Source of the DNA: Isurus oxyrinchus
Lineage: Eukaryota
DNA length: 64,000 bases
Direction: 5' to 3'
Assembly: GCA_026770705.1 (NCBI GenBank)
Contig: JANJGN010000557.1
Span: 186,001-250,000, forward strand
Part shown: one piece after another, positions 1,267-52,604 of the stretch
How positions within the stretch are numbered: the stretch's first letter is position 1
How the letters are laid out: each line of letters starts with the position of its first letter
Translations under genes and position numbers: made by a program
Notes under the pieces: model-generated
Told to the model about the DNA's origin: nothing
Seen by the model: the letters and a program-made list of their open reading frames with translations, nothing else
The model's database searches: none

Positions 1267-1563
1267 ATTTCACAGATAAACCCACGATATTCCCTGCTGA
1301 AATTATTGCAGGAAAGCGTGTGGATGTAAGCTGCACCTTCAACACAACGTGCAATGGAACAGCAGCACCTGTCTTAACCTGGGACACTCCCACTGACGTA
1401 CCTGGATCAGTTTCAAACACTGTAACTCAGCATGGTGTCACTCTGTCCTATGCTTCTGTTCTGACCCTGATCCCATCACTCAAACACCACGGACACAATC
1501 TCAGCTGCAGAGTGAGTTATCCATCTGTTTCATCGGAGCGGACCCTCGTACTAACAGTGCAAG
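1267..1563 (+). pseudogene. Siglec C2-set Ig exon of gene B
   Basis: 297-nt open exon, ttag/gtaat boundaries, paralog of the gene A C2 exon including the extra Cys (CTFNTTC). Confidence 0.82.
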
Positions 1564-1701
1564 GTAATTACATACACCTTTCATTCTACATCAGCACTCC
1601 CTCAGCGCAGACCCTCTGACAGTGCAGCCCGTTCTCTGTATCCACATTCTAAGGCCTCTCTAAGTGCTTCAAAGTCGATAGAAGTTAATTGATCTTTATT
1701 T

Positions 1702-1885
1702 GATTATTGCTGAATGAAGAGACAAGCTGTCTAAACTTTACATCTCGCACACACCATTCTCCATGGCAACACCTCCACCTATCAGAGACCACTTGCCAAC
1801 CAATCAGCACTCTCTTCCCATTGAGTATAAATTGTTGTTCACTTTCTGTTGGTAATCCTGTGAACGGGCTTCTTGATTCCTGCCA
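1702..1885 (+). mobile_element. Foreign, probably LTR-derived fragment with CCAAT and TATA boxes; replaces the acceptor and 5' half of an Ig exon
   Basis: Similarity to the gene A intron stops at TTTATTTG (about 1701) and resumes mid-exon at about 1887. The insert contains CCAATCAGC followed by GTATAAAT. Confidence 0.45.
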
Positions 1886-2039
1886 TGACATCTGAATGTC
1901 CAAATGAACAGAACAAGTTCCAACAATGAGCTGTGGTTGGTGATTCCTCATGTTACATCCAGGGACACTGGAGACTATCAGTGTGTGGCAGAGAAAGAAC
2001 ATGGAGCAGTGGATGGGTTCATAACCATCAGTGTGGAAC
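1886..2039 (+). pseudogene. 5'-truncated Ig (stalk) exon of gene B
   Basis: HLNVQMNRTSSNNELWLVIPHVTSRDTGDYQCVAEKEHGAVDGFITISVE followed by a gtgag donor. An in-frame TGA at 1886-1888 replaces the CGA seen in gene A copies, and the first Cys and acceptor are missing. Confidence 0.85.
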
Positions 2040-3708
2040 GTGAGTTACACAGACTTCAACAACTCTCTCAGATTCGAACACGACACAAACACCATCGAAC
2101 ATACACACCTAAATAGACACGTGCAGACACACATATATGACCACACACAAAGACACACTCACATACAAACACTAACACTCACTCCCTCATGGGTTACCTG
2201 ACCTCCCTCAGTACTGCACTGGAGAGTTGGCCTGAAATCTGGGATTTGTGTTCCCATTCATATTTATGGAAGAATATGGAAATTACTATTACAGACACTC
2301 AGATGCATAGAGACACTCACAGATACTCTCTGCGTCTCCAACTCTCTCTCTCCTTTTAAGAAGCTTCCTGAAACCTAACCCTTTGATGAATCACCAACCC
2401 AACTCTTCCTTATCTGATTCTGTGTGATTTTCTTTGTGTATCTGAGAGTAAGAGAGAGTTGGAGAGGTTTAGGAAGAGAATTCCTGCTGGTGAAAAGCTT
2501 ACATAATGTTCTCACTATTTCCGTGCACATAATTCCCATTATGTGCAATGCCCCTGTTTATAATGATGACTGCCTATGTAAACGTCACGCTGTAGTTACA
2601 GCCTCCCACCAGTGGTGGCATTGTAGCCCTTAATCCTTGTGTTTCCCAGCTTTCCCAGCAACTCTACTTCCCAGTTTGCGACACAAGCTGTGAGTTCATC
2701 GGAATTCAATTATTTCTCAAACGGTAGATTTGATGTCATTTTATTGAAAACTTCCTCAGCGCCTCCCTGAAGGGTTTACACTCTCCGGGAAGCAGGAATA
2801 GGCTGGATGTTGGGGAGTTCATCTTTTCCTAGAGAGTAGGGATCCTCGGGAATGTGCTGTCAGTGGGTGTGGTGGTTGCTGTTTCTCTGTCACCTTCAAG
2901 AGGGATCTGGAGTGGTTACTGACTGGGGGAGAGATCATGGAAACGGAGAATGATACAGCACAGGAGGAGGCCATTCAGCCCATTGAGCCTGTGCCAGGTC
3001 TTTCAATGTTCTATCCCATCAGATCCACTAACCACCACTCCACTTTGCACCCATTTTCCTCCTTCAAGTGTTTATCCAATTTCCCTTTTGAAAGTTCCTA
3101 TTGAATCTGCTTCCACTGCCCTTTCAGGCAGCACCTTCCAGATCACAACAACTCGCTCTGTCAAAACAAATTCTCCTCATCTCCCCCTCCGGTTCGTCAA
3201 TCTGTGTCCCTCTGGTTACCGACCCTCCTGCCCCTTAAATACATCGATACTGTTCACATCACACACTCCCAGTGGGAGCGAGTTCCACATTCTCCCCTCT
3301 CTCTGGGTAAAGATTGGAACTGTTTATTAAGCGGGGGGTGTAAGTCCGTGGGGGAGTCCATCTCGATCCTGCCCGATTCGCACACGCGTCCGAGATGGAT
3401 TTCCACCCTGCACTAAACGTTTCCAGAATTTTCTACAGCACAATCCTGTACACAGCGATGGAGAGAAACATTGGACAGGGAGTCCAACAGCACAATGATC
3501 CATTCTCACCAATGTTCCACGCTAAGGGGAAAGTTGCGATTGTCCACTCTTAGAGTGTTTACAATGAAAACATTCATTCCACATTGAATCCCAGTGGATG
3601 GGTCAATATTACAGCAAATGTTGCAGTGATATGAAGCTTGATTGTTCAGCCAGAGTGAGAGATTGAAAGCGGAGAGTCAGTGATGATTTCTTTCTGTGTG
3701 TTCTCTAG

Positions 3709-3828
3709 ACAGTGGAGGAGAGATTCTGCACGTGATCCTGATCCTGGGAATACGAGCTGTGATATTCCTTGTGGCTGTGGTTATCACTATCACTGGAGTC
3801 TGTGTCTGGGAGAGACAAACAGTGAAAG
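3709..3828 (+). pseudogene. Transmembrane exon with intramembrane Arg (activating type), gene B
   Basis: Polypyrimidine acceptor ttctctag, phase 1 matching the preceding Ig exon. Encodes SGGEILHVILILGIRAVIFLVAVVITITGVCVWERQT, Arg codon at 3753-3755. Donor is ambiguous: ACA|gtgaaa at 3821, or degenerate AAG|gaagt at 3828. Confidence 0.75.
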
Positions 3829-3859
3829 GAAGTTTAAAGCTTTGCACAGCAACAATCTC

Positions 3860-4460
3860 ATCATGGAACAGAAGAACGGCATTCGGCCCATCGACTCCAT
3901 GCTGTCTCTCTGTAAAGCAATCCAGTCAGTCCCATTCCCCCGCTCTATCCCCGTATCCCTGCAAGGTTATTTCCCCTCAAGTGTCCATCCAATTTCCTTT
4001 TGAAATCGTTCATCGTCTCCGCTTCCACCATCCTCGTAGGCAGAGAGTACCAGCTCATTACCACTCGCTGTGTAAAAAAGTTCCTCCTCAAATCCCCCCT
4101 CTGCCCAAAACCTTCAATCTGTGTCCCCCAGTCCTTGTCCCATCAGCTAATGGCAACAGCTTCTCTTTGTCTGCCTTATCTAAACCCATCATCATCTTGT
4201 ACACCTCGATCAGATCCCCCCTCAATCTCCTTTGCTCCAAGGAGAACAACCCCAGCTTCTCCAACCCAACCTTGTAGCTAAAATCCCTCATCCCTGGACC
4301 CATTCTGCTCAATCTCCTCCCCACCCTCTCAAGGACCCTCACTTCCTTCCCAAAGTGAGGAGACCAGAACTGGACACAATACTCTAGTTGTGACCTAACC
4401 AGAGCTTTATAAATGTTCAGCATAACCTCCCTGTGTTTGTACTCAATCCCTCAATTTATG
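3860..4460 (-). mobile_element. CR1-type LINE 3' fragment
   Basis: ORF 4088..4423: YKALVRSQLEYCVQFWSPH...LGLFSLEQRRLRGDLIEVYK, typical CR1 ORF2 C-terminus. Confidence 0.88.
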
Positions 4461-4479
4461 AAAAGCTTATTCTTTCCAG

Positions 4480-4830
4480 CAGCACAAACAGCAATTTCCA
4501 AGCGGACTCCCATCAGCAGACAGAGTGCAATGAAACATCGGCATGCCTGCTTCTTAATGTACGGAGAGAAACCTGGAACGAGAGATTCTCCTTCTTCTCC
4601 TCAGCAAGCTGAAACTTTTCCTTATACCTGGTGCTCCCCAGTCCTGCTGTGTGGACACATCATAACCACGGCATTGTCTGGCTGTGTGCAGCCAACATGG
4701 TTGAATAGGAATGAACAGAAATGTGACGTTGCTAAACTCTGTTCTCTGATTGGAATGTGCTTTCTGAATGCTGCACCTTTTTCATGCTGCGATAGATTGT
4801 AAGAAGCATTTGGCTTATGAATAAAATTAT
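4480..4830 (+). other. Probable terminal exon of gene B (short cytoplasmic tail plus 3'UTR)
   Basis: Acceptor ttctttccag. Phase 0 gives QHKQQFPSGLPSADRVQ*. 4680-4760 is similar to the gene A 3'UTR (32340-32400). AATAAA at about 4820. Confidence 0.5.
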
Positions 4831-5169
4831 ATTGATTAACTCAAGTGATTAAAATGCTCAGCCTGTTCTGTAGATATTTAGAGATTAAAATTCTTATTTT
4901 GCTGCAAAATTCTTGGCTCAAAGACATTACTTCATGTTGTCACGTTTTCCAATCAGATGAATTCCTCTGTCCATCTTTATAATAGAAATTTCCAATGTAA
5001 ACATGTCACATTGTAGCTGCACACTCTTGCCAGTGGGTGGTGTGATATCAAAGCTGTCTTGCTGCTGAGAAACAGCGAGAAATATTCCTGTTGTGTGCAT
5101 GAACTTCATGTTAGCATGAGACACAGGCATCAGATGCAATTTTGTGAAACTTGTACAATGTTCTTTAGA

Positions 5170-5587
5170 CAGCGCAGCACTCCCTCAGTACTGACCCTCC
5201 AACAGCGCAGCACTCCCTCAGTTCAGACCCTCCTACAGTGCAGCACTCCTTCAGATCAGACCCTCCGACAATGCAGCACTCCCTCAGTTCAAACCCTCCG
5301 ACAGTGCAGCACTCCCTCAGTTCAGACCCTCCGACTTTGCAGCACTCCCTCAGTTCAAACCCTCAGACAGTGCAGCACTCCCTCAGATCAGAACCTCCGA
5401 CAGTGCAGCACTCTCTCAGTTCAAACCATCCGACAGTGCAGCACTCCCTCAGTTCAAACCCTCCGACAGTGCAGCACTCCCTCAGTTCAGAGCCTCCAAC
5501 AGTGCAGCACTCCCTCAGCTCAGACCCTCCGACAGTGAGGCACTCCCTCAGTACTGAACCTCCGACAGTGCTGCACTACCTCAGTAC
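5170..5587. repeat. 33-bp minisatellite (CAGTGCAGCACTCCCTCAGT..GACCCTCCGA)
   Basis: About 12 tandem units; source of the repetitive ORFs. Confidence 0.92.
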
Positions 5588-5685
5588 TTCTCCGCCGATG
5601 CTGCCAGACCTGCTGAGTTTTTCCAGGTATTTCTGTTTCTGTTTTTGTTTTGGATTTCCAGCATCTGCAGTTTTTTTGCTTTTAG
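5588..5685 (+). mobile_element. Penelope-derived 3' terminal fragment
   Basis: TTCTCCGCCGATGCTGCCAGACCTGCTGAGTTTTTCCAGG matches the Penelope termini at 41465-41520 and 39200-39290. Confidence 0.7.
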
Positions 5686-6699
5686 TGCTGGGCAGTTCCT
5701 CAGCAAGGATTCGGGCCACAAAACATTGCGAGTGCTGTGGGTCTGCGCCACGATTTAGAGAGCTGTGCTTGGCACGCCTATTCTAGTCCCAGTCCAGTGT
5801 GGTGGGGAGAGTCTGGCAGTCCTGGGTTGGTCGTGCCCAGCATGGTGTGAGTGACGTGGTCAGTCCCTCACACACGTCGGTCCTGGGGGTGGGTGGCTTG
5901 ATACTAGGCCGCAGGTGGCACAATCCCAGTCAGGGGAGGCATCTGCAGCCTGTCAGTGGGGAGCAGGTAATATAGAGAGTAGGGGTGGGGGTGGGAATCG
6001 AGGGGGGCCGGTGGTCTCTGTAAGTCACAGTACAATGGGCCTCTAGTTGGAGAGAGGTCAGGTCTACATGGGGCATTGGGATGTCAACATCAGACAGTCT
6101 AGGGAGGAGGACTGGGATGTCAACCCCGAACACAATAAGATCAAGGATTAGAGAGGAAGGGAGGAGACTGATTGGAAGGAGGGGAATGTGCACATTATGC
6201 TCCTCCAGCACGATGGGAGGGACTGTGATGGTTACAGGGGTGGGGGGGGGGGTGACGTGTGAGGGGATAGACGCTTACCTGGTGGTATTGCCTCAGCCTC
6301 ACCCTTTTTCAAGCTGATCCAATGTCGCAGTTGAAGAATAAGCTACAAAACAAATTGGCAGGGGAGGTCTCCCAGGGCCTGTGGGAGACATCACCCACTG
6401 CATCTTCGGCCTGTTTGAAGGGGCACCCGAACAATTCCAGCTTTTCCAAATGATGAGGAAGACACAGCTGCACCCCGAGTCCCCTACTGGGGATCCAGAA
6501 GGTTGCAATAGCGCTGCGAGGGACTCATGGGTTCCACAGTGACTCCCTAATTAGCGACTGGAAGGTTTATGTTCATTTATCTTTATTATCCGTTCATATT
6601 GAGCAATGGAGCTCCTGATTTGTCACCTTTCTGTACCTCGTCCAATGCTTCTGTTATCAGGACTTCCACATCGATGTGAAAGAGCCATGATGATAGCAG

Positions 6700-6830
6700 A
6701 CAGTCGCACCATGGGAATGGCACTAGGCCAGTGATCCAGAGGCCCAGGTGAATGCTTTGAAGGCACGGGTTCAAATCCCACCACGGCAGCTGGAGGAATT
6801 TCAATTCGATTAATCAATAAATTTAATTGA
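6700..6830 (+). mobile_element. tRNA-derived SINE head fragment
   Basis: B-box-like GGTTCAAATCCC; a related copy lies in reverse orientation at about 17270-17370. Confidence 0.55.
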
Positions 6831-7084
6831 TTGATACATTTTTTTCTTATTCATTTCAGGGATGTTGGTGTCGCTGACTCGGCCAGTATTTGTTGCCCAT
6901 CCCCATTTGCCTTTGAGAACATATGGATATCTGAGTTAGGATCAGGAGTAGGTCACTCAGCCCCTCGAACCTGCTCCGCCATTCAGTAAGATCATGGCTG
7001 ATCTGATTGTCACCTCAACCTCACATTCCTGCCTACCCCCAATGACCTTTCACCCCATTGTTAATCAAGAATCTATCTAGCTCT

Positions 7085-7410
7085 GTGGAAGGGGAGCCAA
7101 TCAATCGGGCTGCTTTGTCCTGGATGGTTTCGAGCTTCTTGAGTGTTGTTGGAGCTGCACTCATCCAGGCATGTGGAGAGTATTCCATCACACTCCTGAC
7201 TTGTGCGTTGTAGATGGTGGACAGGCTTTGGGGAGTCAGGAGGTGAGTTACTGTCTGCAGGGTTCCCAGCCTCTGACCTGCTCTTGCAGCCACAGTGTTT
7301 ATATGGCTGGTCCAGTTCAGTTTCTGCTCAATGGTAACTCCCAGGATGTTGATATTGGGGGATTCATTGATGGTAATGCCATTGAATGCCAAGGGGCGAT
7401 GGTTATGAAT
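7085..7410 (-). mobile_element. CR1/L2-superfamily LINE RT C-terminal fragment
   Basis: NILGVTIEQKLNWTSHINTVAARAGQRLG...YNAQVRSVMEYSPHAW...IQDKAARLI. Confidence 0.85.
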
Positions 7411-7964
7411 GGTCTGTGGGATATTCTGGTACAAAATTTCAACACTCGGACTCCAGATGCAATATTCAAGTGGTTCCTTTATTAGGCATGTGGGGAGCAA
7501 ACGCTGGGCAGTACAGGCGCTTCTCCACCGAGGTTCAAATGAGCACAGTTTATATATTTTTTACTCTCAGTTACAAGGTAATGGTATTAGTTAGACAAAG
7601 GCCACAGCACAATGACCCTCCGGTGGGCTGATAATTGTGTTCTTGTTCAGTAATTACAGGGCAGAGACTGGCTATTGTCCTTTTGAGACAGCAAAGAATC
7701 TATGTTTGTTCGATACAAAAGGTTACCGGAGGCTGACTGGATGTGGTTCAAGGCCATCGGACGGTGTGAAATAACCTTCCCCATTTCTTGATTGAGTCAC
7801 CCTGTGTCCTTGTGTGTGTCTCCCATTTCCTCATTGCAAATTTCCAACTGAGCCCTTAGTACAGGTTTTTAAGTTTTCACGTAAGGATGTGTACGCTTTG
7901 GCGCCCTAGCTGCTGGTCCTGGCTGGCTCTTGAACGTAAATCCAAATTTTCTGCACCTTCAATT

Positions 7965-10894: not shown

Positions 10895-11353
10895 TGCACA
10901 CTCACACACCCACACCCACACAGACACACTGACACACTCACTCATTCACATTGACACACACTGACACAGTCACACACACCCACACAGACACACTGACACA
11001 CTCACTCATTCACATTGACACACACTGACAGTCACACACACCCACACAGACACACTGACACACTCACTCATACACATTGACACACACTGACACAGTCACA
11101 CACACCCACACAGACACACTGACACACTCATTCATTCACATTGACACACACATATTGACAGTCACACACACCCACACAGACACACTGACACACTCACTCA
11201 TTCACATTGACACACACTGACAGTCACACACACCCACACAGACACACTGACACACTCACTCATTCACATTGACACACACTGACACAGTCACACACACCCA
11301 CACAGACACACTGACACACTCATTCATTCACATTGACATACACATATTGACAG

Positions 11354-11388
<35 letters not shown>

Positions 11389-11390
11389 CA
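10895..11390. repeat. CA-rich tandem repeat (about 58-60 bp unit)
   Basis: Repeating ACACACCCACACAGACACACTGACACACTCACTCATTCACATTG. Confidence 0.88.
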
Positions 11391-11574
11391 TAAAGACAGA
11401 CACAAACACAGTCACGTGAGGTGAATAGTGTCGATGTATTTAAGGGGAAGCTGGATAAACACACGAGGGAGAAATGAATAGAAGGATATGGTGATGGGGT
11501 GAGATGGAGAAGGGGTGGGCGGAGACTCGTGTGGAGCAGAAACACCAGCACGGAGCAGATGGGCCAAATGACTC

Positions 11575-11750
11575 TCTGACAATGCAGCACACCCTCAAAA
11601 CTCACCCTCCAAGAGTGCAGCACTCCTTCAAGACTGACCCTCTAACAGTGCAGCACACCCTCAGTACTGACCCTCTGACAGTGCAGCACACCCTCAGTAC
11701 TGACCCTCTGACAGTGCAGCACACCCTCAATACTGACCCTCCGACAGCTC
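11575..11750. repeat. 33-bp minisatellite
   Basis: Same unit as 5170-5587. Confidence 0.85.
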
Positions 11751-13715: not shown

Positions 13716-13789
13716 GAGTGTTGACCGACGTTATGGGACTGAATTCCCTGGAGTGAGACTCAGACCAGAGATTTAGGTAGGGTTGTTCT

Positions 13790-18705: not shown

Positions 18706-18734
18706 TGCACTGTAAACTTGTTGTGATACTGTAA

Positions 18735-19683: not shown

Positions 19684-20092
19684 GTTTAAGCCTCACGCCC
19701 GGTGGTTGTTTCCTGTCCCAGCTGAGGACTGGCGCCATGTTGTACATCCTGTAAATCCCGCCAGTCTCTCCCAGCACTTTCCATGCCTGGCGCTATTTCC
19801 ATGGTGCGCTTCAAATCGATGTCGGCTTCTGCGAGTAAACGGCTCTGAATGGCGTTGGGGTGAACGACACAAACCAATCGGCCCCGCAACATGTCATTGA
19901 GTGTGTCTCCGAGGTCCCAGTGCTCAGTCACCTGCTTCCACTTCACTGTATAGGTTGCGATTGACTCACCCGGGGCCCTTACTCTGGAGTTAAACTTAAA
20001 CCTTTTCATTATTACCCACGGCATCAGCTGAAAACACATCTTCATGAGGTCGACTAATTGGTGAAAAGATTTAGAATTGGGTGCAATGCACG
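18945..20092 (-). mobile_element. Gypsy-type LTR retrotransposon gag-protease fragment (degenerate)
   Basis: Gag motif RFKFNSRVRAPGESIATY...LNDMLRGRLVC...IQSRLLAE, Zn knuckle CRFKGAECHHCHKKG, frameshifted DTGAS protease motif, and PSLLGRDW. Confidence 0.87.
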
Positions 20093-20357
20093 TCACTGTC
20101 TTCAGCTCTGAGACTGTCAATCCTCACCAAACAATTCTTCCCTTCCAAGTCGCCGATTATTTTAGCACGTACCACGAATGTGGGATCTTTGGTGTATGTG
20201 ATGGTATATTTCCATCTATACCAATATTTATACCAAGCTCCGTGCAGTGCTGTGTAAGAGTGGGAAGGAAAGTCAAAGCTACACGGAATAACCACACAAG
20301 AGCTGCTGATGGCCCTCCGAGGCAGCGCCTTCATAGACCATCCCTCTGACGTCACTC
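20093..20357 (-). pseudogene. 3'-truncated Siglec/MAG-like V-set exon (gene D)
   Basis: Acceptor tttcag, phase 1. GVTSEGWSMKALPRRAISSSCVVIPCSFDFP...GAWYK...RAKIIGDLEGKNCLVRIDSLRAEDSD shows the Siglec CxxxPC...C pattern. Ends before the F-strand Arg, at the Gypsy junction. Confidence 0.8.
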
Positions 20358-20404
20358 CTGAAAGGCAACAAGGGAGGGGACTGAACATCAAAAAGCAGAA
20401 TATT

Positions 20405-20800
20405 ACTTCAATGGAGAGAAGTATGCGGTACAGAGGGATCTGGGTGTCCTTGTACATGAATCACAGAAAGTTAGCATTCAGGAACAGCACGGAATGAGGA
20501 AGGCAAGTGGAATGTTGGCCTTTATTGCAAAGGGATGGAGTATAAAAGGAGGGGAGTCTTGCTACAACTGTACAGGGCGTTGGTGAGATTGTATCAGGAG
20601 CAGTGTGTACAGTTCTGGTCTCCTTACTTAGGGAGGGATAGACTCTGCATTGGAGGCAGCTCAGAGGAGGATCACTGGGCTGATTCCTGGGATGAAGGGG
20701 GTTTGTCTTATGAGGAAATGTTGAGCAGGTTGGGCCCTGTATCCATTGGAGTTTAGAAGAATGAGAGGTGATCTTATTGAAACATATAAGATTCTGAGGT
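20405..20800 (+). mobile_element. CR1-type LINE fragment
   Basis: MEYKRRGVLLQLYRALVRL...CVQFWSPYL...RMRGDLIETYKIL. Confidence 0.82.
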
Positions 20801-23370: not shown

Positions 23371-25619
23371 CTGATACAGAATGTTTTTAAGACCTGTTCA
23401 TGATTTCAGCTCAAAACCCAGGTAGATTCTCCCCAGTGAGGGAGTGGTGAGGGAGTGCTGCACTGTCGGAGGATCAGTACTGAGGGCGTGCTGCACTGTG
23501 AGAGGGTAAGTACTGAGGGAGTGCTGCACTGTCGGAGGATCAGTACTGAACACAATGTCCATTCAGAACAGCTCGGTCCCCGATCAGAGAAACAGCCTCA
23601 GACAGAACCAACTGACGCTGGAATCCATAAAATTCATCAACGTGTTGGGAATTAGTTTGATGTCGGAGATGGAGTGTTACTGGGAAGGAGGGAACCCGTC
23701 AGGATGAACAGCTCGATGTACGACAAGGAAAGGATGAGCTAAGAGGGGTTGGCCACGGACAGACGGAGCATGTGAAGACTCAACAACCTAATGGCAGGTG
23801 AAGAGCTGGAAAGGTGTCTTTTCAACGCAAGGTTTAGACACAGAACTCGATGTTTGATCGGGTCTTTCAAACCAGAGAAACTCTTTACAGGGTGAATGGA
23901 CCTGGTCAATAATCCATCCAGCCAACCTCGCCTGGAGATTAGTCCAATATTAGACACTAAACCTTGTCCCCCGTCTGCCCTCTCGGGTGGGTGTGAAAGA
24001 TTCCACAGCCACTATTTGGAGGAAGAGCAGGGGGGAGATCTCCCCGGTGTCCTGGGACCAGTATTTATCCCTCAACCAACATCACCAAAAACAGATGATC
24101 ACATTGCTGTTTGTGGGAGCATGCTGTGCGCTAATTGGCTGCTGCGTTTCCTACATTACAACAGTAACCACACTTCGAAAAAAGGGTGTACTCAACTGTA
24201 AAGTGTTCTGGGACATCCAGAGACCATGCTGTACAGAAGAGATTTGACAGGAGCAGCAAGTGTTTTACTTACAGGAGAATGAGTCCCCAGGGTTGTAGAG
24301 TCAATCCTGTCAGATGAATGTCTAACTGGAGACACTTCAGGGAGCTGATCTAATTCTGGAAATGTTCAGTTTAGCAGGATCGGAGGAGAGATGATCTTCC
24401 TCTCCTGACTGCATCGGACACGAGGTGAACTGGCTCTGGGAGGAGGGTCAGTGTTAACCCAGTTTTTCTGTGTTTGAGGGAGATGTGAAACTGGGGAAGT
24501 CAATTGGTTTTTTGGTGTGGTAACTCCATGTCTTTATTTGGTGCAGCACTCATTTAGTTCATGTCGTTGTTTCAATGCTACAAAACCACAGCGCATTCTG
24601 GACTATTTCTGCCTGACCTGCTGTCAGATACACACAGTCTGACAGAGAGGCGGAAAAGTGGTCCCTAGCAACGTGTGTAACTGTNNNNNNNNNNNNNNNN
24701 NNNNNNNNNNNNNNNNNNNNNNNNNNNNNNNNNNNNNNNNNNNNNNNNNNNNNNNNNNNNNNNNNNNNNNNNNNNNNNNNNNNNNNNNNNNNNNNNNNNN
24801 NNNNNNNNNNNNNNNNNNNNNNNNNNNNNNNNNNNNNNNNNNNNNNNNNNNNNNNNNNNNNNNNNNNNNNNNNNNNNNNNNNNNNNNNNNNNNNNNNNNN
24901 NNNNNNNCACTCTTTTGCACAAACACTCTTTCACGCACACACATGCACACACACATGCACACAAACGCACAAACTCACTCACACACAAACCCTCACACAC
25001 ACACAGACACAAACATTAGCACACACACACTCACACATGCACACATACTCTCAAACACACACTGTTTTGCACAAACACTTTCTCTTTCACACACACACAT
25101 ACACACACACTCTCTCTCTCACACACATGTTCTCTCTCACTCCCTGTCTCAAACACACAATCTCCCCCTCCCTCAAACACTCACACCATCTCTTTCTCGC
25201 ACACTCCCTCTCTCAAACACACACACCCTCTTTCTCAAACACACACACACACACGATCTCACACACACACTCTCACATACACAAACACTCTCTCACAGAC
25301 ACACACTCTGTTTTGCACACACACTATCTCACACGCACATTCTCTCTATCTTTCTCTCTCACACATAAATTCTCTCTCACTCTCACAGACGTTCTCTTTC
25401 TCTCACGCACACTCTCTCTCTCACACACACAAGCTACCTCCCTCTCTCATGCACACACACTCTACCTCTCTTTTGCTCTCTCACACATACACACTCTCAG
25501 TCTCTCACACATACATTGTCTCTCTCTCTCACATAAACGCACTCTCTCTCTCTGAGATGGAAGGTTGGGATTTTGAGACCGTCTCAAGGTTTCAGCTTAA
25601 AATGCGGACGGACTCTTCC

Positions 25620-25910
25620 CAGTGAGGGAGTGCTGCACTGTTGGAGGGTCAGTACTGAGGGAGTGCTGCACTGTCAGAGGGTCAGTACTGAGAGAGTGCT
25701 GCACTGTTGGAGGGTTAGCACTGAGGGAGTGCTGCACTTCCAGAGGGTCGGTACTGAGGGAGAGCTGCACTCCCAGAGGGTCAGTGCTGAGGGAGTGCTG
25801 CACTCCCAGAGGGTCAATACTGAAGGAGTGCTGCACTCTCAAAGGGTCAATGCTGAGGGAGTGCTGCACTGTCAGAGGGTGGGCACTGAGGGAATGCTGC
25901 TCTGTCAGAC
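25620..25910. repeat. 33-bp minisatellite (reverse orientation)
   Basis: GAGGGAGTGCTGCACTGTCAGAGGGTCAGTACT units; a shorter array at 23440-23550. Confidence 0.88.
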
Positions 25911-26312
25911 CTGCCATATTTCAGATGACATTTGAAATTAGCAACATGCCTCATGTATAATTATATATCATCAGCTCAAAATAAATAGATTATTCCTGTA
26001 CGTTTCACTTTACTGTAAATTGTTTGCAGTTTCATTTCCTTAGAAACCAGGCTTGTGTGATCACTATTTTTAAATAACGTTAATAATAAAGATGCAACAA
26101 TCCACACGCACACATGTACACACACACACACATTCACTCACAAGGGTACATAGACAGACACACACTCACNNNNNNNNNNNNNNNNNNNNNNNNNNNNNNN
26201 NNNNNNNNNNNNNNNNNNNNNNNNNNNNNNNNNNNNNNNNNNNNNNNNNNNNNNNNNNNNNNNNNNNNNNNNNNNNNNNNNNNNNNNNNNNNNNNNNNNN
26301 NNNNNNNNNNNN

Positions 26313-28505
26313 TTAGAGTCCAATAAAAATTTAAAAGAATATATGATTAATACAATTGCTTGTCTTTGAGGTGCAGATTGTTGACGTTTGCAGCTGTTCA
26401 AGGTTAATTGGTTTCCTGTGGCATCCTGGTGGTGATTTGATTCAGATTTGCACTTTGTTGAAGATGCGCTGTTAGCTTCAGAAAGAGAGAGAGAGAGAGA
26501 GAATTTCTGCTCTTTTCCAGCAGTGTTTTTGAGTGACTGCCATCTTTCTTTTTCCTCCTACTTTCTCTTATATCTGCTTGACAGAACCTGTTGTTAAACT
26601 CCTGTCTGTATATTCCCAAAGGGAATTCGATCAGCATGTCTTGCATTCATTGTCGCAGACCAAGTAATCCCTTTTTTGATCTTTGCATCTCTGAAACATT
26701 TGATGCATTTCAAGATATAAATCAACAGGAGATGGAGGCATTTCATCCTCCACAAGGGGTTTTGAATGACTGATGAATATCTGCATGGTGAGCAGTTCCC
26801 ATTAGCTTGATAGACCTACAGTGATCAGAGTCCAGCGCTTTGCATTTTTAATGGAGCCCCTGTTTCAAGTGGACCCTGACACACCTCAGTGAGAACTTTC
26901 ATGCAACATGTCTGTAGTGCAATTCATTTGAAGCTTTCCAGAGAAGTGATCAAGTTTGCAGTATCAGCAATCAGGTGACTCGTGACAGCCATTTTTGATC
27001 AATGCCTAATCTTGTACTTTTGAAAAACAGGTCTCCTTTAAACAGTTCAATACATTTTTGGCTCGTTGGTTAAGTTGAAGGAAGCTCTGTTATGACATAA
27101 CAGATGGTAAATGCTGAGCTGTTCAAATCCTGGAGGGAAACTTGAAACAACTGTCACAACTAATTTCCAACTTGTATGTTTTGAGATGTGGGCTTTGAAT
27201 TCAGTAGTAATGAGATTAAGATGTTTAAGAGGTAATTATGGTTGGTTGACAAAAAGGGTTTAAAATATATTTTCCCCCAAATGCAATTTCCAAAGCAAGT
27301 CTCTTTGATTGTTAAGAATGAACCAATTAAACCACGTATGGTGGAGTCAAAGAAAGAGTAAGTTTATTAGTTACCTAACTGGAGGAAAAATAATNNNNNN
27401 NNNNNNNNNNNNNNNNNNNNNNNNNNNNNNNNNNNNNNNNNNNNNNNNNNNNNNNNNNNNNNNNNNNNNNNNNNNNNNNNNNNNNNNNNNNNNNNNNNNN
27501 NNNNNNNNNNNNNNNNNNNNNNNNNNNNNNNNNNNNNNNNNGACAGACAAATGCGCANNNNNNNNNNNNNNNNNNNNNNNNNNNNNNNNNNNNNNNNNNN
27601 NNNNNNNNNNNNNNNNNNNNNNNNNNNNNNNNNNNNNNNNNNNNNNNNNNNNNNNNNNNNNNNNNNNNNNNNNNNNNNNNNNNNNNNNNNNNNNNNNNNN
27701 NNNNNNNNNNNNNNNATAATTATAGAGTCCAATAAAAAATTAAAAGAGTCGTTTGCTTGTACTACAGCGTAGGCTGTGAAGTTTGAAGCTGTTTTAAATT
27801 AGTTGGTTTTCTGTAGATTCCTGTATTTTATCTGGCTCAGACTTGCACATTGTTGAAGACATTCTGTTAGCTTCAGACAGAGAGAGAAAGAGGGAGAAAT
27901 CATTTCTGCTCTTTTCCAGCAGTGTTTGTGGAAGACTGCCATATTTCTTTTTCCCCTCCTTTCTCTTATATCTGCTTGGCAGAACCATTTGTTAAACTCC
28001 TGTCTGTATATCCCTGAAGTCAATTCGATCAGCATGTTTTGCATTCATTGTTATAGACCAAGTATTCCCATTTTTTTATCTTTGCATCTCTGAAACCTTT
28101 GATGCATTTCAAGATATAAATCAACAGGAGACGGGGGTATTGTATCCTCCACAGGGGGTTTTGAATGGTTGATGATTATCCGCTTGGTGAGCAGTTCCCA
28201 ATGTTTTGATTGAACTACAGCTGATCAAAGTCCAGCACTTTACATTTTAATGCCTTCCTTTTAAGAGTGTCTCTATTTGAAGTGGACCCTGACACACCCC
28301 AGGCGTGAACTTCCATGCAACAGGTCTGCAGTGCAATTCATTTGAACCTTTCCAGAGAAGTGATCAACTTCACAGTATCAGCAATCAGGTGACTTGTGTC
28401 AGCCATTTTTGATCTGTGTACAATCTTGTATTTCTTTGAAAAACAGGTCGCTTTTAGACAGTTCAATATGTCTTTGGTCTCTTAGTTAAGTTGTAGGAAG
28501 CTCTT
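26313..28505. repeat. Direct duplication of an approx. 770-bp unit of unknown identity (26313-27088 and 27722-28505)
   Basis: Both copies begin TAGAGTCCAATAAAAA and end GTTAAGTTG.AGGAAGCTCT; parallel ORFs 26404..26646 and 27799..28044. Confidence 0.8.
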
Positions 28506-29529
28506 AATCGCAGTTTGTTGTCATTGGGATATTGTCTTTGTGTGTGTGTTTGTGTGTGTGAGTGAGTGTGTGAGTGAATGTGTGTGTGTGAGTGAATGTG
28601 TGTGTGTGTGTGAATGTGTGTGTTTGTGTCTGTCTGNNNNNNNNNNNNNNNNNNNNNNNNNNNNNNNNNNNNNNNNNNNNNNNNNNNNNNNNNNNNNNNN
28701 NNNNNNNNNNNNNNNNNNNNNNNNNNNNNNNNNNNNNNNNNNNNNNNNNNNNNNNNNNNNNNNNNNNNNNNNNNNNNNNNNNNNNNNNNNNNNNNNNNNN
28801 NNNNNNNNNNNNNNNNNNNNNNNNNNNNNNNNNNNNNNNNNNNNNNNNNNNNNNNNNNNNNNNNNNNNNNNNNNNNNNACAGAGTGAAACCTCCTTGAGT
28901 CTGGCCACTGTGTTTAACATTTAAGCCACACAGACAGGATGTGGTTAAAAGGTGAAACCACAAGGAGTGAGTGACTTTCTCAGTGACTGTCTCTCTGTGG
29001 GTTTCCTGTGGGTTTCTGTGAACTGCCTGTGGTTTTAAAAAGAATCTTCCAACCCCACATGCACGGCATCAAATAAGGATTTGGAAGCTGCTGCTCAGAG
29101 AGTAACTAGTCCCCCGAGAATTCACAGCCCCTCAAACACAGATTAGCAGCATTAATCCTGACCGTCAGCCCACTCACTCATTGCCTCTTGTCTCAGACAC
29201 TAGAAAGTGGAAGTTAAGGCCGGATTTTCACTCCCGGGTCGGGGGACACAGAGACGGCAGGAAAAAATAACATAATATGTCTCGAGCACACAGAGCTCCA
29301 AGGGAAGGGTCGTGCTGCAGCTAAGGTGTGAGACATGGCACATTCCCCGGATGCAGCATTGAGGCTTGTATGTCTACACAGCTGATGTAGGTGCACATGG
29401 AACACATGTGAATGAGCACTGTGATGCACACACACCCTGGAGAGTAATATCCCTCCATGCACTACATATCAGGCTAACATCAACTCATGTTGTCATTGCT
29501 GAATCACAGGGTTGAAGCAGGTCACAGAG

Positions 29530-32130: not shown

Positions 32131-32422
32131 CCCCTGATTCCCATTGACTCCAGTTTTGCTCGGGATCCTAGATGCCACACTCGGTTAAATGCAGCCTTGA
32201 TGTCAAAGGCAGTCACTCTCACCTCACCTTGTATTAACAGATGTAAAATTATAGATAATTCATAAGCTTCTCACAATCTTTTACAGCATGGAAAAAGGTA
32301 CAGCATACAGAAAGCTCACTCAGAACCAATAAAAAAAAAGTTGAGCAACATCATATTTGTGTTCATTACTATTTGGCCATGTTGGCTGCACACACCCCAC
32401 AGCCCCACTCCCTGTTTTACAC

Positions 32423-32671
32423 TCAGTTTTTCTGGAACCTGATCTGTGCGTATTCTGTGTCCTCGCTCCTGTGCACAGTCCTGTCACCGCTGGGCAGCTT
32501 TGAAAAGTTGATGTTGGCGTAGAGAATCTCGTCGGGTTTGTCAGGATTCCCATGTCCAGCATCACCTCCCACTGGACCTTCAGAGAGACCCAGGGGAGCT
32601 GGGGTCTCCCCCTCACTAGTTGTGTCTCTGGTTGTGTTCCGGGGCTCAGTAATCAGCACGTTCTGTTTACC
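32423..32671 (-). CDS. Gene A terminal exon: cytoplasmic tail with ITIM (ILYANI) and ITSM-like (TEYAQI) motifs
   Basis: Acceptor ctgtag, phase 0. GKQNVLITEP...DEILYANINFSKLPSGDRTVHRSEDTEYAQIRFQKN*. Motif pair typical of CD33-related Siglec tails. Confidence 0.9.
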   Translation of the reverse strand, partial: GKQNVLITEPRNTTRDTTSEGETPAPLGLSEGPVGGDAGHGNPDKPDEILYANINFSKLPSGDRTVHRSEDTEYAQIRFQKN

Positions 32672-32974: not shown

Positions 32975-33560
32975 TGACAGTGCGGCACTCCCTCACAACT
33001 GCCTCTTCGAGAAGGCAGCACCACTTGAATATTGACTATTCGACAGTGCAGCACCCCCTCAGTACTGACCCTCGCACAGTGCAGCACTCCCTCAGTACTG
33101 ACACTCCAACAGTGCAGCGCTCCCTCAGTACTGACCCTCCGACAGTGCAGCACTCCCTCACTACTGACCCTCCGACAGTGCAGCACTGCCTCAGTACTGA
33201 CACTCCGACAGTGCAACACTCCCTCAGTACTGACCCTCCGACAGTGCAGCACTCCCTCAGTACTGACCCTCTGACAGTGCAGCACTCCCTCAGTACCTAC
33301 CCTCCGACAGTGCAGCACTCCCTCAGTAGTGAAGCTCCGACAGTGCAGCACTCCCTCAGTACCTACCCTCCGACAGTGCAGCACTGCCTCAGTACTGACA
33401 CTCCGACAGTGCAGCACTCCCTCAGTACCTACCCTCCGACAGTTCAGCACTCCCTCAGTACTGACCCTCCGACAGTGCAGCACTGCCTCAGTACTGACAC
33501 TCTGACAGTGCAGCACTCCCTCAGTACCTACCCTCCGACAGTGCAGCACTCCCTCAGTAG
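32975..33560. repeat. 33-bp minisatellite in the last intron of gene A
   Basis: About 17 units. Confidence 0.93.
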
Positions 33561-33778: not shown

Positions 33779-33860
33779 CTGGTGCTTCACAGAGAGTGGA
33801 CTGGGGCTCAATGCAATGTCACTGGTCCCTAAAACTCTCTCCTCCATCGCTGTCTTTCTC
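33779..33860 (-). CDS. Gene A cytoplasmic exon 1
   Basis: 82 nt, ttgcag/gtacag, phase 2 to 0. RKTAMEERVLGTSDIALSPSPLSVKHQ; conserved paralog at 59041-59122. Confidence 0.8.
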
Positions 33861-34531: not shown

Positions 34532-34628
34532 TTTCTCACACAGATGAAGATGAAGATTCCAGCCAGGAAAACACTCAACATGATCCCAGCCGTGAACAAT
34601 CCTACTGTCCATTTACTGGAGTCTCTAC
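34532..34628 (-). CDS. Gene A transmembrane exon (uncharged TM)
   Basis: 97 nt, tttacag/gtaag, phase 1 to 2. RDSSKWTVGLFTAGIMLSVFLAGIFIFICVRK. Confidence 0.88.
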
Positions 34629-35445: not shown

Positions 35446-35727
35446 ATTCCACAGTGATGGTTATGAACCCCTCCACTGCTCCATGTTCATTCTCTGCCAC
35501 ACACTGATAGTCTCCAGTGTCCCTGGATGTAACGTGAGGAATCACCAACCACAGCTCATTGTTGGAACTTGTTCTGTTCATTGGGATATTAAGATGTCGC
35601 CACGTCAGGTTAGAAGCTGGGAAGCTCTCGACAGAGCAGATTATCACTGTAGAATTCCCCTCAATTATATTGATCGATGAAGCGTTAATCATATCAAGAG
35701 AAGTAAATAAGAGATTCTGTGGAGCAT
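35446..35727 (-). CDS. Gene A Ig stalk exon 8
   Basis: 282 nt, phase 1-1, tag/gtgag. APQNLLFTSLDMINASS...ICSVESFPASNLTW...GDYQCVAENEHG...ITVE. Confidence 0.87.
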
Positions 35728-36218
35728 CTAAGAACAAATCAAGTGTTTAATGTGAGCAAGCACAGTTTACAGCAAGACTCCATGCATTATCTCTCTGTAT
35801 CTGATGTCTGTATGCATAGCCAGGTCCCTCCACTCCATATGACTTCCACTGTCAAATTTATAATGGGCACTGCCTATGTAAACAGTCAAACTGCAGTTAC
35901 ATTCTCCCACCATTAGAGGCGCTGTCCACCTAGAATGAAAGGAATTTGCTTTCACATCCTCAGGATGTCCCCAAGGGCTTGACAGGCAATGATTGTATTT
36001 GATCGATGGAGCACTGAGGGGTAAATCTACAATTCTCTGTTCAGGAGGTTGCTCATCCAATTCAGGGACTTGTTGATCTGTAGTTTACCTTCGTTCCATC
36101 CAGAATTGGAGCTGATCCCGAGACTCCAGTGCAGTGAGTGCTTGTGTGTGCATGTGGGTGTGCATTTGTGTATATGTGTTCAAATCTGAGAGAGATGTTG
36201 AATTCTGTGTACACTCAC

Positions 36219-36500
36219 ATTCCCCAGTGATGGTTATGAATCCCTCCACTGCTCCATGTTCATTCTCTGCCACACACTGATAGTCTCCAGTGTCCCTGGA
36301 TGTAACGTGAGGAATCACCAACCACAGCTCATTGTTGGAACTTGTTCTGTTCATTTGGACATTAAGATGTTGCCACGTCAGGTTAGAAGCTGGGAAGCTC
36401 TCGACAGAGCAGATTATCACTGCAGAATTCCCCTCAATTATATTGATCGATGAAACGTTAATCATATCCAGAGAAGTAATTAAGAGATTCCGTGGTGCGT
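36219..36500 (-). CDS. Gene A Ig stalk exon 7
   Basis: 282-nt open exon, canonical splice sites. Confidence 0.87.
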
Positions 36501-37290
36501 CTAAAAATAAATAAAGATTTTAATGTGAGCAAGCATAGTGCACAGCAAGACTCCATGCATCATCTCTCTGTATCTGATATTGGAATGCATTTCCAGGTAC
36601 CTTCCCTCAGGAAAAAATACTGTCACATTTATAATGGGCATTTCCTATGTAAACTGTCACACTGCAGTTGCATTCTCCCACCAGTAGAGTTGCTGTCCAT
36701 CTAGAATGAAAGAAACATCCTTTAACACTCTCAAGATGCCCCCAAGGGATTGAAAGCCATTGAATTGTATTTGATTGATGGAGCACTGAGGGGTAAATCT
36801 ACCATTCTCTGTTCAGGAGGTTGCTCATCCAATTCAGGGTCTTGTTGATCTGGAGTTTACCTTCCTTCAACACAGAATCGAAGCTGATACCAAGACTCCA
36901 GTGCGGCCCTGAGAGAGAAGAGGGACCTCACGCGTGTTTATGTGTATGTGTTTGTGTTTGTACATATGTGAGTATGTTTGTGTGAGTATGCATGCATGTG
37001 TCTGTGTGTGCATGTATGTGTTTGCGCATATGTGAGTGTGTTTTTGTGTATATTTCTGTGCATGAGTGAATGTGTGTACATGTGTATGTGTATGTGTGTG
37101 CATGTGTGAGTGTGTGTGTGTGAGTTGAGTGTGTGTATGTTTCTGTGTATATTTTTGCATGCGTATGTTTGTGTGTGTAAATGTGCATGTATGTGTCTAC
37201 ACGAGTGCATGTTGTGTTTTTGTGTGTGTGTGTGTGTGTGTGTCTGTGTGTGTCTGTGTGAGAGTGATGTTGAAGTTTGCAGTAACTCAC

Positions 37291-49158: not shown

Positions 49159-50039
49159 CTGGGGAGAGAAATATCAATATTTAACTCTGGATGTTTTTTC
49201 GATCCACTAGACTTGATATCTACTCCCTCCATCACTAGGGCACAGTGGCTGCAGTGTGGACCATCTACAGGACACACAAGGAAATCCCCAAGGTTTCACA
49301 ATGGATGGAAGAGAATCCTGGACACAGGAGTGGACTAGTTGATTCTACATTGGCTCATGGTCCTCAGGACCCTGTTTAGTTTTTTCAAATTACTCATTCA
49401 TATCATTTATTACCCATCCCATGTCTATCAGAGGTATTTAAGATTCAACCACATTGCTGTGGGTTTGGAGTGACATGTCGGCCAGACTGGGTAAGGGTGG
49501 CAGATTTCCTTCCCTATAGGTGATCAGTGAACCAGGCTTTTTAATCCCATTCATCTGCCGTGATGGGATTCACATCCAGGGCCCCAGAGCATCACCCTGG
49601 GCCTCTGGAATACTAGCCCAGTGACAATACCTCTCTGCTACCGCTTCCCCTTAGTGAAGCCAGTCTTCCACCCAACACAGTGTCAACAAGACCCACCAAT
49701 TGAGATCCATTCAGTGCTGATTTACAAGACAGGACAATGGATTAGGAGCCCTCAGAACTCCCCCCATTATCACCGTCATGAATCACTAATTAGCCAAACA
49801 TTCCTGTCTGCTCTTCAACACAGCTGATTGGCTAATCTGATTCAATCTGATTGGTGTTCATTCCCTCTTCAATGTTTAAGGAATCACCAATCACTCGGCC
49901 TCTAGTTATTCTCCTGCCCGCAAGAGTGAAAATTCTTTGTCTACCCAGTCAATCAAAACCTTTCATCTAAACCTAGTGGTGCTTGAGTATATAGTCGGGA
50001 ATCCAGGGCAATGGAGCCTCAGGAGAAGAGATGGAAACC

Positions 50040-50513
50040 CTGTGAGGTGGAACGTCACTGAGGCCATCCGAGTTGAAGCAACTTTTGGAGAGAATTCCAA
50101 GGCAAGATCTTCGAAGTTGAAGATTGGAATCCCTCATGAGAGAAATAGAGTTTCAGTGAGATTGGTTGACTGACAGTGTTCACTGATGTCCGGGTGGGTT
50201 GTTGTGAAATCCATGGGATCTGTCTTGGTCGCGTTTACAATTTAATGAGTAATGTGGCTGTGAGACCACAGTTTGTCTGTTAATTCACATGAGCTCATAT
50301 TAACCCAGAATGTTAGGGTATAAGGTGGATATTGTAAATTATTTTATCTTTCTGAGCTGGTGCAGTAAAGTTTATTTTTGTTTGTTTAAAAGCCATGGAA
50401 ACTCTGTTTCTCTCATGAGGGATACCAATCTTCAACTTCGTACATCCTGCCTTGGAATTCTCTCCAAAAGTCGCTTCAACTCGGATGGCCTCAGTGACGT
50501 TCCACCTCACAGG
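50040..50513. repeat. Intronic inverted repeat (arms about 50040-50155 and 50398-50513)
   Basis: TGTGAGGTGGAACGTCACTGAGGCCATCCGAGTTGAAG is mirrored by CTTCAACTCGGATGGCCTCAGTGACGTTCCACCTCACA. Confidence 0.88.
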
Positions 50514-50634
50514 AATCTTGTAGCTTTATTCTCTTCGCAGGCGTCTTAAATCTCAAACCTCGTCTCCTTGAAACAAAACATTACTTGTTCTTAACTGTAA
50601 ATTACCAAAAAAAATTGGGTGTCTGTTCCTCCAT

Positions 50635-51690
50635 CAGCAACTCTTCAGAATCCTGCTGAAGTCACGGATATTTCAGAAGGACAGGGAACAAGAGGTTTCT
50701 GGTATCAGCGTTTTGTGTGGGGCCCAGTTCAGTTTGAACAAATAAACAACACCATCTTTGAAAGTCATGAACCCACCACAGCGGCACCTCCGACACATGC
50801 AGAGCTCAGGCGAGAGGCGCTTTGTTAGTGTGTTTCACAGTGTCTGCTGGAGTAGGGTCAGTGCTGAGCTTGGGGACAAGTCAGTCTACAATGCTGCATC
50901 GGAATCAACAATACAACAATATGGGGTTTGGATCAGAAATAATCCCTTAGACAATGAGGATCCAAAGAGATTCCTTAGACAATGAAGATCCAAAAAGAGG
51001 AACAACGTTGCTATGAGTCTGGAGTCACATGTAGGCCAGACCAGATATTGACGGCAGATTTCCTTCCCTAAAGGCCATTAGTAAACCAGATGGGTGTGTA
51101 TGACAATCGATGATAGTTTCATGTTCTCCATTACTGAGACTGACTCCCATTAGTGTAAACAGAGTGAACAGTTTTCCATTGATCCCACCTTTCCCGTTCT
51201 CTCCGGTATTTTACACACTATTGCTCGATAATTTGATTCTGCCAAGGACCCCTTGGAAAATCATGGACCCCAGTTAGACAACCAATGGAATAAGGAGTCT
51301 CTTTGGATTCTCACTGCCAAAGGAATCTCTTTGGATCCTCATTGTCTAAGGAATCTCTTTGAATCCTCATTGTCTAAGGGATTATTTCTGATCCAAACCC
51401 CATATTGTTGTATTGTTGATTCCGATGCAGCATTGTAGACTGACTTGTCCCTAAGCTCAGCACTGACCCTACTCCAGCAGACACTGTGAAACACACTAAC
51501 AAAGCGCCTCTAGCCTGAGCTCTGCATGTGTCGGAGGTGCCGCTGTGGTGAGTTCATGACTTTCAAAGATGCTGTTGTCATTTTTTTGTTCAAACTGAAC
51601 TGGGCCCCACATGAAGTGTTGATACCAGAAACTTCTTGTTCCCTGTCTTTCTGAAACATCTGTGATTCAGCAGGATTCTGAAGATTTGCT
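50635..51690. repeat. Intronic inverted repeat (arms about 50635-50990 and 51325-51690)
   Basis: GATGCAGCATTGTAGACTGACTTGTCCC mirrors GGGACAAGTCAGTCTACAATGCTGCATC; similarity runs over about 350 bp. Confidence 0.88.
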
Positions 51691-52564
51691 GACAAGGTTC
51701 TTAAATTGTCTGATTGTTGAATGATACAACACAGGAGGAGCTCATTTGACCCATCGTGCATGTGCTGGCTCTTTCCCAATTCCTCTCCAGCACCTTTCAC
51801 ACAGCCCTGCAAATTTCCCTTCAAGTATTTATCCAGTTCCCCTTCTGAAAGTTCCTGTTGAATCTGCTTCCACCGCCCTTTCAGGCAGTGAGTCAATGGT
51901 CTCTCTCTGAGCTGCAAAGTGCTCAGATTCTGTGAAATTTAAACTCTGCAGCAGGTCAGAGACACTCATGATAACTCGGAATATTTGACAGAATTACACA
52001 CAAACGGCTTTATCTTCTTCTCTCTTTCAGTTATCTTGCTCCCTTATTGAAGTATCTAGCAAGGTGAGAATGGACAGGAAGTGTGACACTGAACAGCCTG
52101 TCTATTCTAGGAGCTGCTGTGCTGTCTTCATGGACAATTTTGAATACAGGCAGCAAAGAACAAAAATTTCAGGCCATTGCTATTGGAGACCTCACATTAG
52201 GATAGGCTTCATCCGCCAGTATTTATCTCTGCTTCTCTACTCAACCCATCAATCCCCATCGCTCACTGACCAACGTCCGACAGCACCTGAATTTTAAGAT
52301 TCTGCTCTAGCTGCTACAAACCTGCCTATCCCTGTACACCCCTCCAGCCCCTACAACCCTGCAAGACCTCTGCTGTCCTCCAATTCTGCTGTCAGACAGG
52401 GAGTCAGTGTATATCAGTGAGCACAGGGGTGATGGATGAATGGGACTTGGTGTGAGTTTGTACACTGGATCACTGCTGAATCAGTTCCCTATCAGAGCTC
52501 AATAAGAATGATCTTTTACAAAGACTATTAGCCATAAATCTGTCTGAGCTGACGATGGTATTAC

Positions 52565-52604
52565 CTTGGAGAAGTGACAGGAGGAAGTAAGATTTCCCGA
52601 TCAT
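52565..52604 (-). CDS. Gene A signal-peptide exon (start codon)
   Basis: MIGKSYFLLSLLQ G|gtaat; 40 nt, phase 1. Confidence 0.85.

Follow-up and report, generated by a model that had tools for sequence, protein, structure and literature searches.

The 64-kb window analyzed here (64,000 nucleotides of Isurus oxyrinchus, contig JANJGN010000557.1, positions 186,001 to 250,000) in all likelihood samples a shark Siglec-like cluster built as a paired receptor family, in which an intact inhibitory gene, gene A, is accompanied by the remnant of an activating-type gene, gene B, that is most likely a pseudogene. Gene A lies on the minus strand from 52604 to 32423 and contains a full Siglec-like exon set, from the leader through a tail with an immunoreceptor tyrosine-based inhibitory motif (ITIM). 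Gene B, on the plus strand, contains a C2 exon almost identical to that of gene A and a transmembrane (TM) exon with an arginine, referred to below as TM(Arg) or the arginine cassette. A first-pass annotation of the same sequence had proposed a paired Siglec family in this lineage, and as far as architecture goes this is borne out, with the arginine cassette and ITIM-tailed members found in the same shark species. The window contains nine runs of N, which touch none of the coding bases of the features discussed and were not filled in; the gene B region (1-5000) is gap-free. Exons were searched singly, and trees were built per domain.

The leader exon of gene A (52565-52604) starts MIGKSYFLLSLLQ with its ATG at 52604, ends in a gtaata donor and matches the leader of annotated shark Siglec-like proteins. 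Behind this one leader lie two V exons, 92% identical at the protein level and both intact, with canonical splice sites and the FFR arginine in the form YFFRIE. V exon 1 (48790-49158) is a Siglec V-set domain with Pfam matches to V-set (1.3e-10) and Ig_CD22 (3e-8) and AG/GT sites in phase 1, and V exon 2 (46756-47124) was identified by V-domain matches, splice sites and the V-domain tree. They are followed by the C2 exon (46088-46384; Pfam C2-set_2, 1.3e-9; canonical splice sites) and by an array of eight 282-nt immunoglobulin (Ig) exons (35446-45540), with eight open frames and matches to Pfam Ig_3/I-set. The seven measured Ig exons (45259-45540, 44183-44464, 42063-42344, 38378-38659, 37291-37572, 36219-36500, and 35446-35727) all have AG/GT sites and a length of 282 nt, and the eighth, at about 43119-43400, has an open frame. 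The TM exon (34532-34628) was located by a hydrophobicity scan, its splice sites and matches to P0021 of Cetorhinus and P0024 of Scyliorhinus canicula, and its span is uncharged, as the first reading had it. A cytoplasmic exon (33779-33860; RKTAMEER...SVKHQ) leads to the last exon (32224-32671), which comprises the coding part (32423-32671, stop at 32423-32425) with both motifs of the first-pass annotation, ILYANI and TEYAQI, as well as a 3'-untranslated region (3'UTR) block in common with gene B (32224-32397). The order of TM exon, cytoplasmic exon and tail is identical in P0021 and P0024. ILYANI fits the ITIM consensus and TEYAQI, which resembles an immunoreceptor tyrosine-based switch motif, fits TxYxx(V/I); they are spaced 23 residues apart, and the same pair is present in P0024 and the sawfish protein P0012. 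All twelve measured exon boundaries of gene A are canonical (AG/GT) and in the expected phase.

Three of the N runs (41917-42055, 42826-43004, and 43968-44175) are located in introns of the Ig array, and two of them (41917-42055 and 43968-44175) start 7 nt past the GT donors of Ig exons. The exon-to-exon periods that span gaps (1076, 1064, and 1056 nt) are similar to two of the three gap-free intervals (1087, 1072, and 773 nt), indicating that the estimated gap sizes are plausible; with Ig units that are some 95% alike, neither how many there are (eight were seen) nor their order or continuity across the gaps is provable. Five gaps at 24685-28878 lie in intergenic repeats. The array also has a 3.4-kb break (38850-41900), which contains an open reading frame (ORF) on the minus strand (39739-40278) with a weak GIY-YIG match (E 1e-4) and the inverted duplicate segments 39620-39991 and 40738-41109, and which resembles an intronic insertion of a Penelope-type retroelement.

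By every sequence criterion examined, namely the V-set FFR arginine and the cysteine pattern, gene A classifies as a Siglec, and its paired tail motifs would place it with the CD33-related subgroup. The best solved-structure matches for V exon 1 are MAG and Siglec-5/7/8 (1e-13 to 1e-14), and the matches include CD33, Siglec-10 and sialoadhesin (E about 1e-14 to 1e-11), with Siglec-15 and CD22 far lower. The FFR arginine, the strand F residue by which Siglecs bind sialic acid, and the cysteines of gene A align with those of MAG and Siglec-5. In the V exons of gene A the cysteines read SCVQIPC, giving the CxxxxxC of strand B, and DCSL on strand E, and the C2 exons of both genes have SCTFNTTC, which suggests the Siglec disulfides, including an interdomain bond through the extra C2 cysteine. 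The V domains of gene A are predicted to bind sialic acid. For the shark V exon the structure scores of MAG and Siglec-5/7/8/CD33 are not separable, and the full-length relative P0024 scores 151 bits with MAG, 136 bits with Siglec-8 and 63 bits with CD22. A search of the ESM Atlas with the ITIM tail exon gave no usable match.

The C2 exon of gene B (1267-1563, plus strand) has an open frame and AG/GT sites and differs from the C2 exon of gene A at 8 of 294 codon-aligned bases (97% identical), so the near-identity claimed for these exons is confirmed; the surrounding block 1139-1595 is 96% identical to 46512-46056. At the end of the exon gene B has an A (CTAACAGTG) where the other two copies, including one in an inverted arm at the window start (arm 1: CTAACTGTG), have a T. 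An Ig exon was likewise said to be shared, which holds for the identity, 94-96% to the Ig copies of gene A, but only for the 3' half of the exon (1887-2041, plus strand): the donor is intact, whereas the 5' half and the acceptor are gone. The TM(Arg) exon (3709-3837, plus strand) starts at an AG acceptor in phase 1, which matches the phase left by the C2 or Ig exon, and its segment 3709-3821, correctly recognized as a TM exon in the first pass, encodes ILILGIRAVIFLVAVVITIT. The arginine (CGA at about 3753-3755) is the 11th of about 29 hydrophobic residues, which puts it in the span's outer half. When 2100-4640 was searched as DNA against the 64-kb window, no further TM(Arg) exon came up. The 3'UTR exon of gene B (4480-4860, plus strand) has tandem CAG acceptors at 4477-4482 and an AATAAA at 4820. 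Its block 4680-4848, described earlier as almost identical to gene A, is only about 80% identical to 32397-32224, and the similarity begins 28 nt past the stop of gene A, short of the ITIM coding part. When 4450-4682 was aligned sensitively with the ITIM exon of gene A, the score was 9, compared with a shuffle mean of 9.4; being no better than the shuffles, it shows no trace of an ITIM coding part kept in gene B.

A word search with the TM(Arg) peptide against 5.8 billion sequences retrieved annotated shark proteins at E = 1.5e-13 to 3.9e-8, and the possibility that the exon is a chance ORF was ruled out by these matches. The best of them, P0001, is a 270-residue "CD33-like" protein of Carcharodon carcharias whose cassette is 90% identical (E 1.5e-13). 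The same search found the cassette in P0002, a "CD22-like" protein of Chiloscyllium punctatum, and in P0003, a "Siglec 16" fragment of Hemiscyllium ocellatum modeled as Ig-Ig-TM(Arg); a search with the V exon added P0004 and P0010 of S. canicula, automatically named Siglec 14 and Siglec 13. In P0001, P0004, and P0010 the V and C2 domains are followed directly by the cassette. The presence of the cassette on a CD22-like ectodomain in P0002 indicates that the exon was shuffled between receptor families. The arginine and the core VILILGIRA are invariant in all seven cassette copies (the window, P0001, P0002, P0003, P0004, P0010, and P0038), so none of these paralogs has lost the arginine. The copies span Lamniformes, Carcharhiniformes, and Orectolobiformes, among which tail length and sequence vary. 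A short tail free of tyrosine, as predicted for gene B, is found in its relatives (5-12 residues and no tyrosine in P0001, P0002, P0003, P0004, and P0010), but in gene B itself the stop is out of frame (TAA at 3835-3837). The FFR motif is kept in the arginine-type P0001 and P0004, and P0010 reads YYFRIG.

Splicing between the TM(Arg) exon and Siglec exons is supported by the models P0001, P0004, P0010, and P0003 and by two contigs from probable RNA runs, four of which, each small with contigs totaling 58-120 Mb, were aligned to 1-6000. One contig in run X2 (organism A) and one in run X5 (organism B) link 352 on one strand to 3707 on the other, two letters at the joint being ambiguous. Positions 350-352 are the donor end of the C2 copy in arm 1, and 3707-3708 is the acceptor AG, so that the 2-nt ambiguity is explained by the shared AG and the joint corresponds exactly to the junction between the C2 and TM(Arg) exons, as it does in P0001. 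The GT at 3822 had been taken as a donor; in the one contig that shows it, from X5, it is read through, the frame continuing VKGSRQTV to a TAA before the contig continues at 4482, where the 3'UTR exon has its tandem-CAG acceptor. A contig in X4 begins at this same acceptor.

Among the 28 shark and ray proteins retrieved by a word search with the Ig exon, similar ectodomains are repeatedly found with three kinds of ending: a WTVGL-type span followed by an ITIM/TEY tail (P0024, P0026, P0021, and the sawfish protein P0012), a WKAGL-type span followed by a tail rich in YxN (P0019, P0023, P0029, P0031, and P0036), and the arginine cassette. P0024, P0026, and P0021 are thus ITIM-tailed members that occur in sharks besides the arginine-type forms. 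Of the annotated species, Cetorhinus maximus, with 98% on one Ig exon, and Carcharodon carcharias, with 92-97%, come closest, and no identical protein was found. In the V-domain tree of 26 rows, from which P0024 and the models without a full V domain were left out, both V domains of gene A fall in one clade (97/94) with the arginine-type P0001 and P0004, and P0001 is the sister of gene A V2 (93/82). The near-identical ectodomains proposed for the two receptor types are seen in C2 (97%), but V can be compared only through P0001, whose V domain is 92% identical to gene A V2. The arginine-type P0010 is placed in another part of the tree, apart from P0001 and P0004, indicating that tail type and V lineage do not go together. 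Such a mismatch would result from exon shuffling or gene conversion between paired genes, and it is drawn here from a small sample of automatic models.

By analogy with CD33-related Siglecs, KIR, LILR, and NITR, the tail of gene A, once tyrosine-phosphorylated, would recruit SHP-1/SHP-2-type phosphatases and dampen the cell. The V-C2-TM(Arg) members would most likely reach the surface and signal only together with an adaptor of the DAP12 or FcR-gamma type that carries a tyrosine-based activation motif of immunoreceptors (ITAM), the membrane aspartate of the adaptor pairing with the TM arginine, which would lead to activation of the cell. The same ligand could then give opposite signals through an inhibitory and an activating member. 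The depth of the arginine appears to fit DAP12-type and FcR-gamma-type pairing alike and does not decide between them.

The gene B copy in the window is disrupted, in agreement with the first-pass annotation. An inverted copy of 1044-1912 (94% identical), cut by the window start, occupies 1-870 on the minus strand and includes a second intact C2 exon (350-646); a 173-nt repeat-rich spacer (871-1043) precedes the gene B arm, which starts about 220 nt before the C2 exon. No leader or V exon for gene B is present in the window, where leaders occur only at 52604 (minus strand) and 62174 (plus strand), and because the inverted arm lies upstream of 1267, no plus-strand leader or V exon is possible there. 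Of the Ig half-exon, the arm at 1-870 also holds the initial 26 nt, and since both arms share the 290-nt intron and the half-exon, truncation of the Ig exon predates the duplication; it may be normal for V-C2-TM genes. As relatives splice C2 directly to the TM exon, the half-exon is a relic and not part of the product. Downstream, the frame of gene B reads VKGSLKL and stays open to 4274 through repeat-like sequence, the family stop having been lost, and 11 nt are missing after 3833 in comparison with the X5 contig, which reads VKGSRQTV-stop. Contigs in X1 and X2 skip from 4014/4015 to 4703/4706 without canonical intron ends, so the skipped sequence is an insert of about 690 bp (4015-4703) in the 3'UTR of gene B. 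A minus-strand ORF in the insert (4091-4450) is retroelement-like by recognition and by similar fragments elsewhere in the window, and a Pfam search with it gave no match. With neither leader nor V exon, a stop out of frame and an insert in the 3'UTR, gene B as assembled is unable to make a receptor, and it is most likely a pseudogene left by the inverted duplication.

Several observations weigh against parts of this picture. The runs were taken as RNA by a guess from contig totals typical of transcriptomes, and the shark protein models are automatic predictions, some of them plainly chimeric or truncated (P0038 and P0005). The C2 side of the junction contigs matches the arm-1 copy, with its T, better than gene B, with its A, and the junction transcript thus probably comes from a paralog, the splice being proven for the family and not for the gene B locus. 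The arms of the inverted repeat flank a high-copy repeat, a typical misjoin site, with none of the aligned contigs bridging both arms, and the loss of the tail frame hinges on a T run (3833-3835). These last two points could mean that gene B works, the inverted arm being a misjoin that hides its leader and V exons and the frameshift in the tail a base-calling error in the T run. The C2 and TM(Arg) exons of gene B have open frames and canonical splice sites, the spacer at 871-1043 is a high-copy repeat at which many contigs end, the region comes from a gap-rich assembly, and one T fewer at 3833-3835 would give a VKGS-stop tail like those of P0002 and P0003. However, the arms differ at 6% of positions, which indicates two real sequences and not one folded back, contigs in X1 and X2 with 1-2 mismatches span the boundary between arm 1 and the spacer, these near-identical contigs have no indel listed at 3833-3835, and the preference of the junction contigs for the other C2 copy also speaks against a working gene B, which we consider quite improbable.

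Two other explanations concern the family as a whole. The TM(Arg) forms could be real and yet not activating, with the arginine serving for retention, shedding or another partner and the tail-less proteins acting as decoys, as might be suggested by tails that are very short and vary in length and sequence among species. It is the tail that varies, whereas the arginine and its neighbors are invariant over three shark orders. A basic TM residue with a tail free of tyrosine marks ITAM-adaptor coupling in KIR, LILR, NITR, Siglec-14/15/16, and PILR-beta, and the shark forms have such a tail together with a conserved basic residue in the span's outer half; a non-activating role is therefore unlikely. 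There is very little room for the idea that a single gene gives rise to both the inhibitory and the arginine forms by splicing to alternative 3' exons, despite the listing of P0004 by NCBI as "isoform X2" of an S. canicula gene and the relation between the 3'UTR exon of gene B and the 3'UTR of gene A. Nowhere else in the window is there DNA related to the TM(Arg) exon, hence none between the Ig array and the TM exon of gene A. Gene B, with a C2 exon of its own, lies on the opposite strand more than 27 kb from the last exon of gene A and more than 40 kb from its C2 exon.

The surroundings of the two genes contain further pieces of the cluster. Upstream of the gene A leader, on the minus strand, are two tail exons (57347-57592 and 60297-60542), with a copy of the cytoplasmic exon near 58942-59232; TEYAQI is kept in both, and the ITIM site reads FLYANP or LLYANP, a proline taking the place of the required I/L/V. 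The window contains neither a TM nor an Ig exon that would go with these tail exons. The Cetorhinus model P0021 strings together two tail units like them. A second leader exon (MIGKYYFLLSLLQ) at 62174 on the plus strand points out of the window, and 61512-63128 compared with 51513-53264 reveals an inverted duplication of the gene A promoter/leader region, which places two Siglec-like genes head to head. On the minus strand at 20074-20460, a V-like exon with SCVVIPC (CxxxxxC) is 30% identical to P0001, lacks the FFR arginine and ends in a stop; a Pfam search with it gave no match, and it probably represents either a V exon in decay or a remote member of the family. A 33-nt tandem repeat (STDPPTVQHSL in one frame) recurs across the cluster, often beside exons, at sites including 5168-5588, 33041-33560, 45678-45968, 57738-58018, and 60770-61360, and it may favor the rearrangements seen there. 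Outside the window, the "MAG-like" protein P0018 of the stingray Hypanus sabinus has a different span that also contains an arginine (SLAVRGVLV), and rays may have their own charged-span form.

The shark cluster resembles the primate pairs Siglec-5/14 and Siglec-11/16, which are linked genes with high identity in the first two ectodomain exons; in both lineages, which are separated by about 450 million years, an ITIM and a distal TxYxxI occur in one member and a basic TM residue and a short tail in the other. The human Siglec-5 and Siglec-9 tails read LHYASL and then TEYSEI (PMC2722167), compared with ILYANI and then TEYAQI in the shark. In the primate pairs, gene conversion homogenizes the first two domains only (PMC4042635), and high similarity in the shark likewise covers C2 and, in relatives, V. 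Unlike in the primate pairs, the shark cassette is an exon of its own that also occurs on a CD22-like ectodomain (P0002), and the activating forms are mostly V-C2 only. Siglec-15 is conserved from fish to mammals, has a membrane lysine and binds DAP12/DAP10. It shares with the shark forms the V-C2 architecture, a basic membrane residue and the lack of an ITIM, but the shark V exon scores 29.5 bits with it compared with 50-56 bits for MAG/CD33-related Siglecs, and the shark cassette has an arginine instead of a lysine, another membrane sequence and inhibitory twins, which Siglec-15 lacks. Among solved structures, MAG (Siglec-4) gives the top match with both the V exon and three-domain P0024, over which Siglec-8 scores about the same, and several shark models are automatically named "MAG-like"; in contrast to the cluster, MAG is a single conserved five-domain gene without an ITIM/TEY pair or activating twin. 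The teleost NITR and LITR, as well as KIR, LILR, and PILR-alpha/beta, also form clusters that mix ITIM tails with short basic-TM tails and, like the shark cluster, show rapid duplication, inversion, and pseudogenes, but they differ in their ectodomains, which come from other families and lack the Siglec V-set with its FFR arginine.

Fish are said to have only Siglec-1, CD22, MAG, and Siglec-15, without inhibitory CD33-related Siglecs (PMC7226832, on teleosts), and a paper on the whale shark genome names Siglecs only in a list (PMC8455134). It is possible, if doubtful, that an ITIM and TEY tail and an adaptor-coupled twin are ancestral to jawed vertebrates, that the shark cluster is the counterpart of the mammalian MAG/CD33-related locus and that teleosts lost it; in that case the reported absence of CD33-related Siglecs from fish (PMC7226832) would hold for bony fish only. 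In the literature searched we found no description of paired Siglecs in sharks or cartilaginous fish and none of DAP12 or FcR-gamma in sharks. Public automatic annotation already contains the shark TM(Arg) genes.

The usual view is that paired Siglecs arose recently in primates and other mammals under pressure from pathogens. The window supplies a full inhibitory gene together with a decayed activating copy that records turnover by inverted duplication, exon loss, and insertions, as is typical of paired-receptor families. The shark cluster would put the paired-Siglec design in the oldest living jawed vertebrates, making it far older than the known mammalian examples, and provides a gene set on which it becomes testable whether this design was inherited or reinvented.

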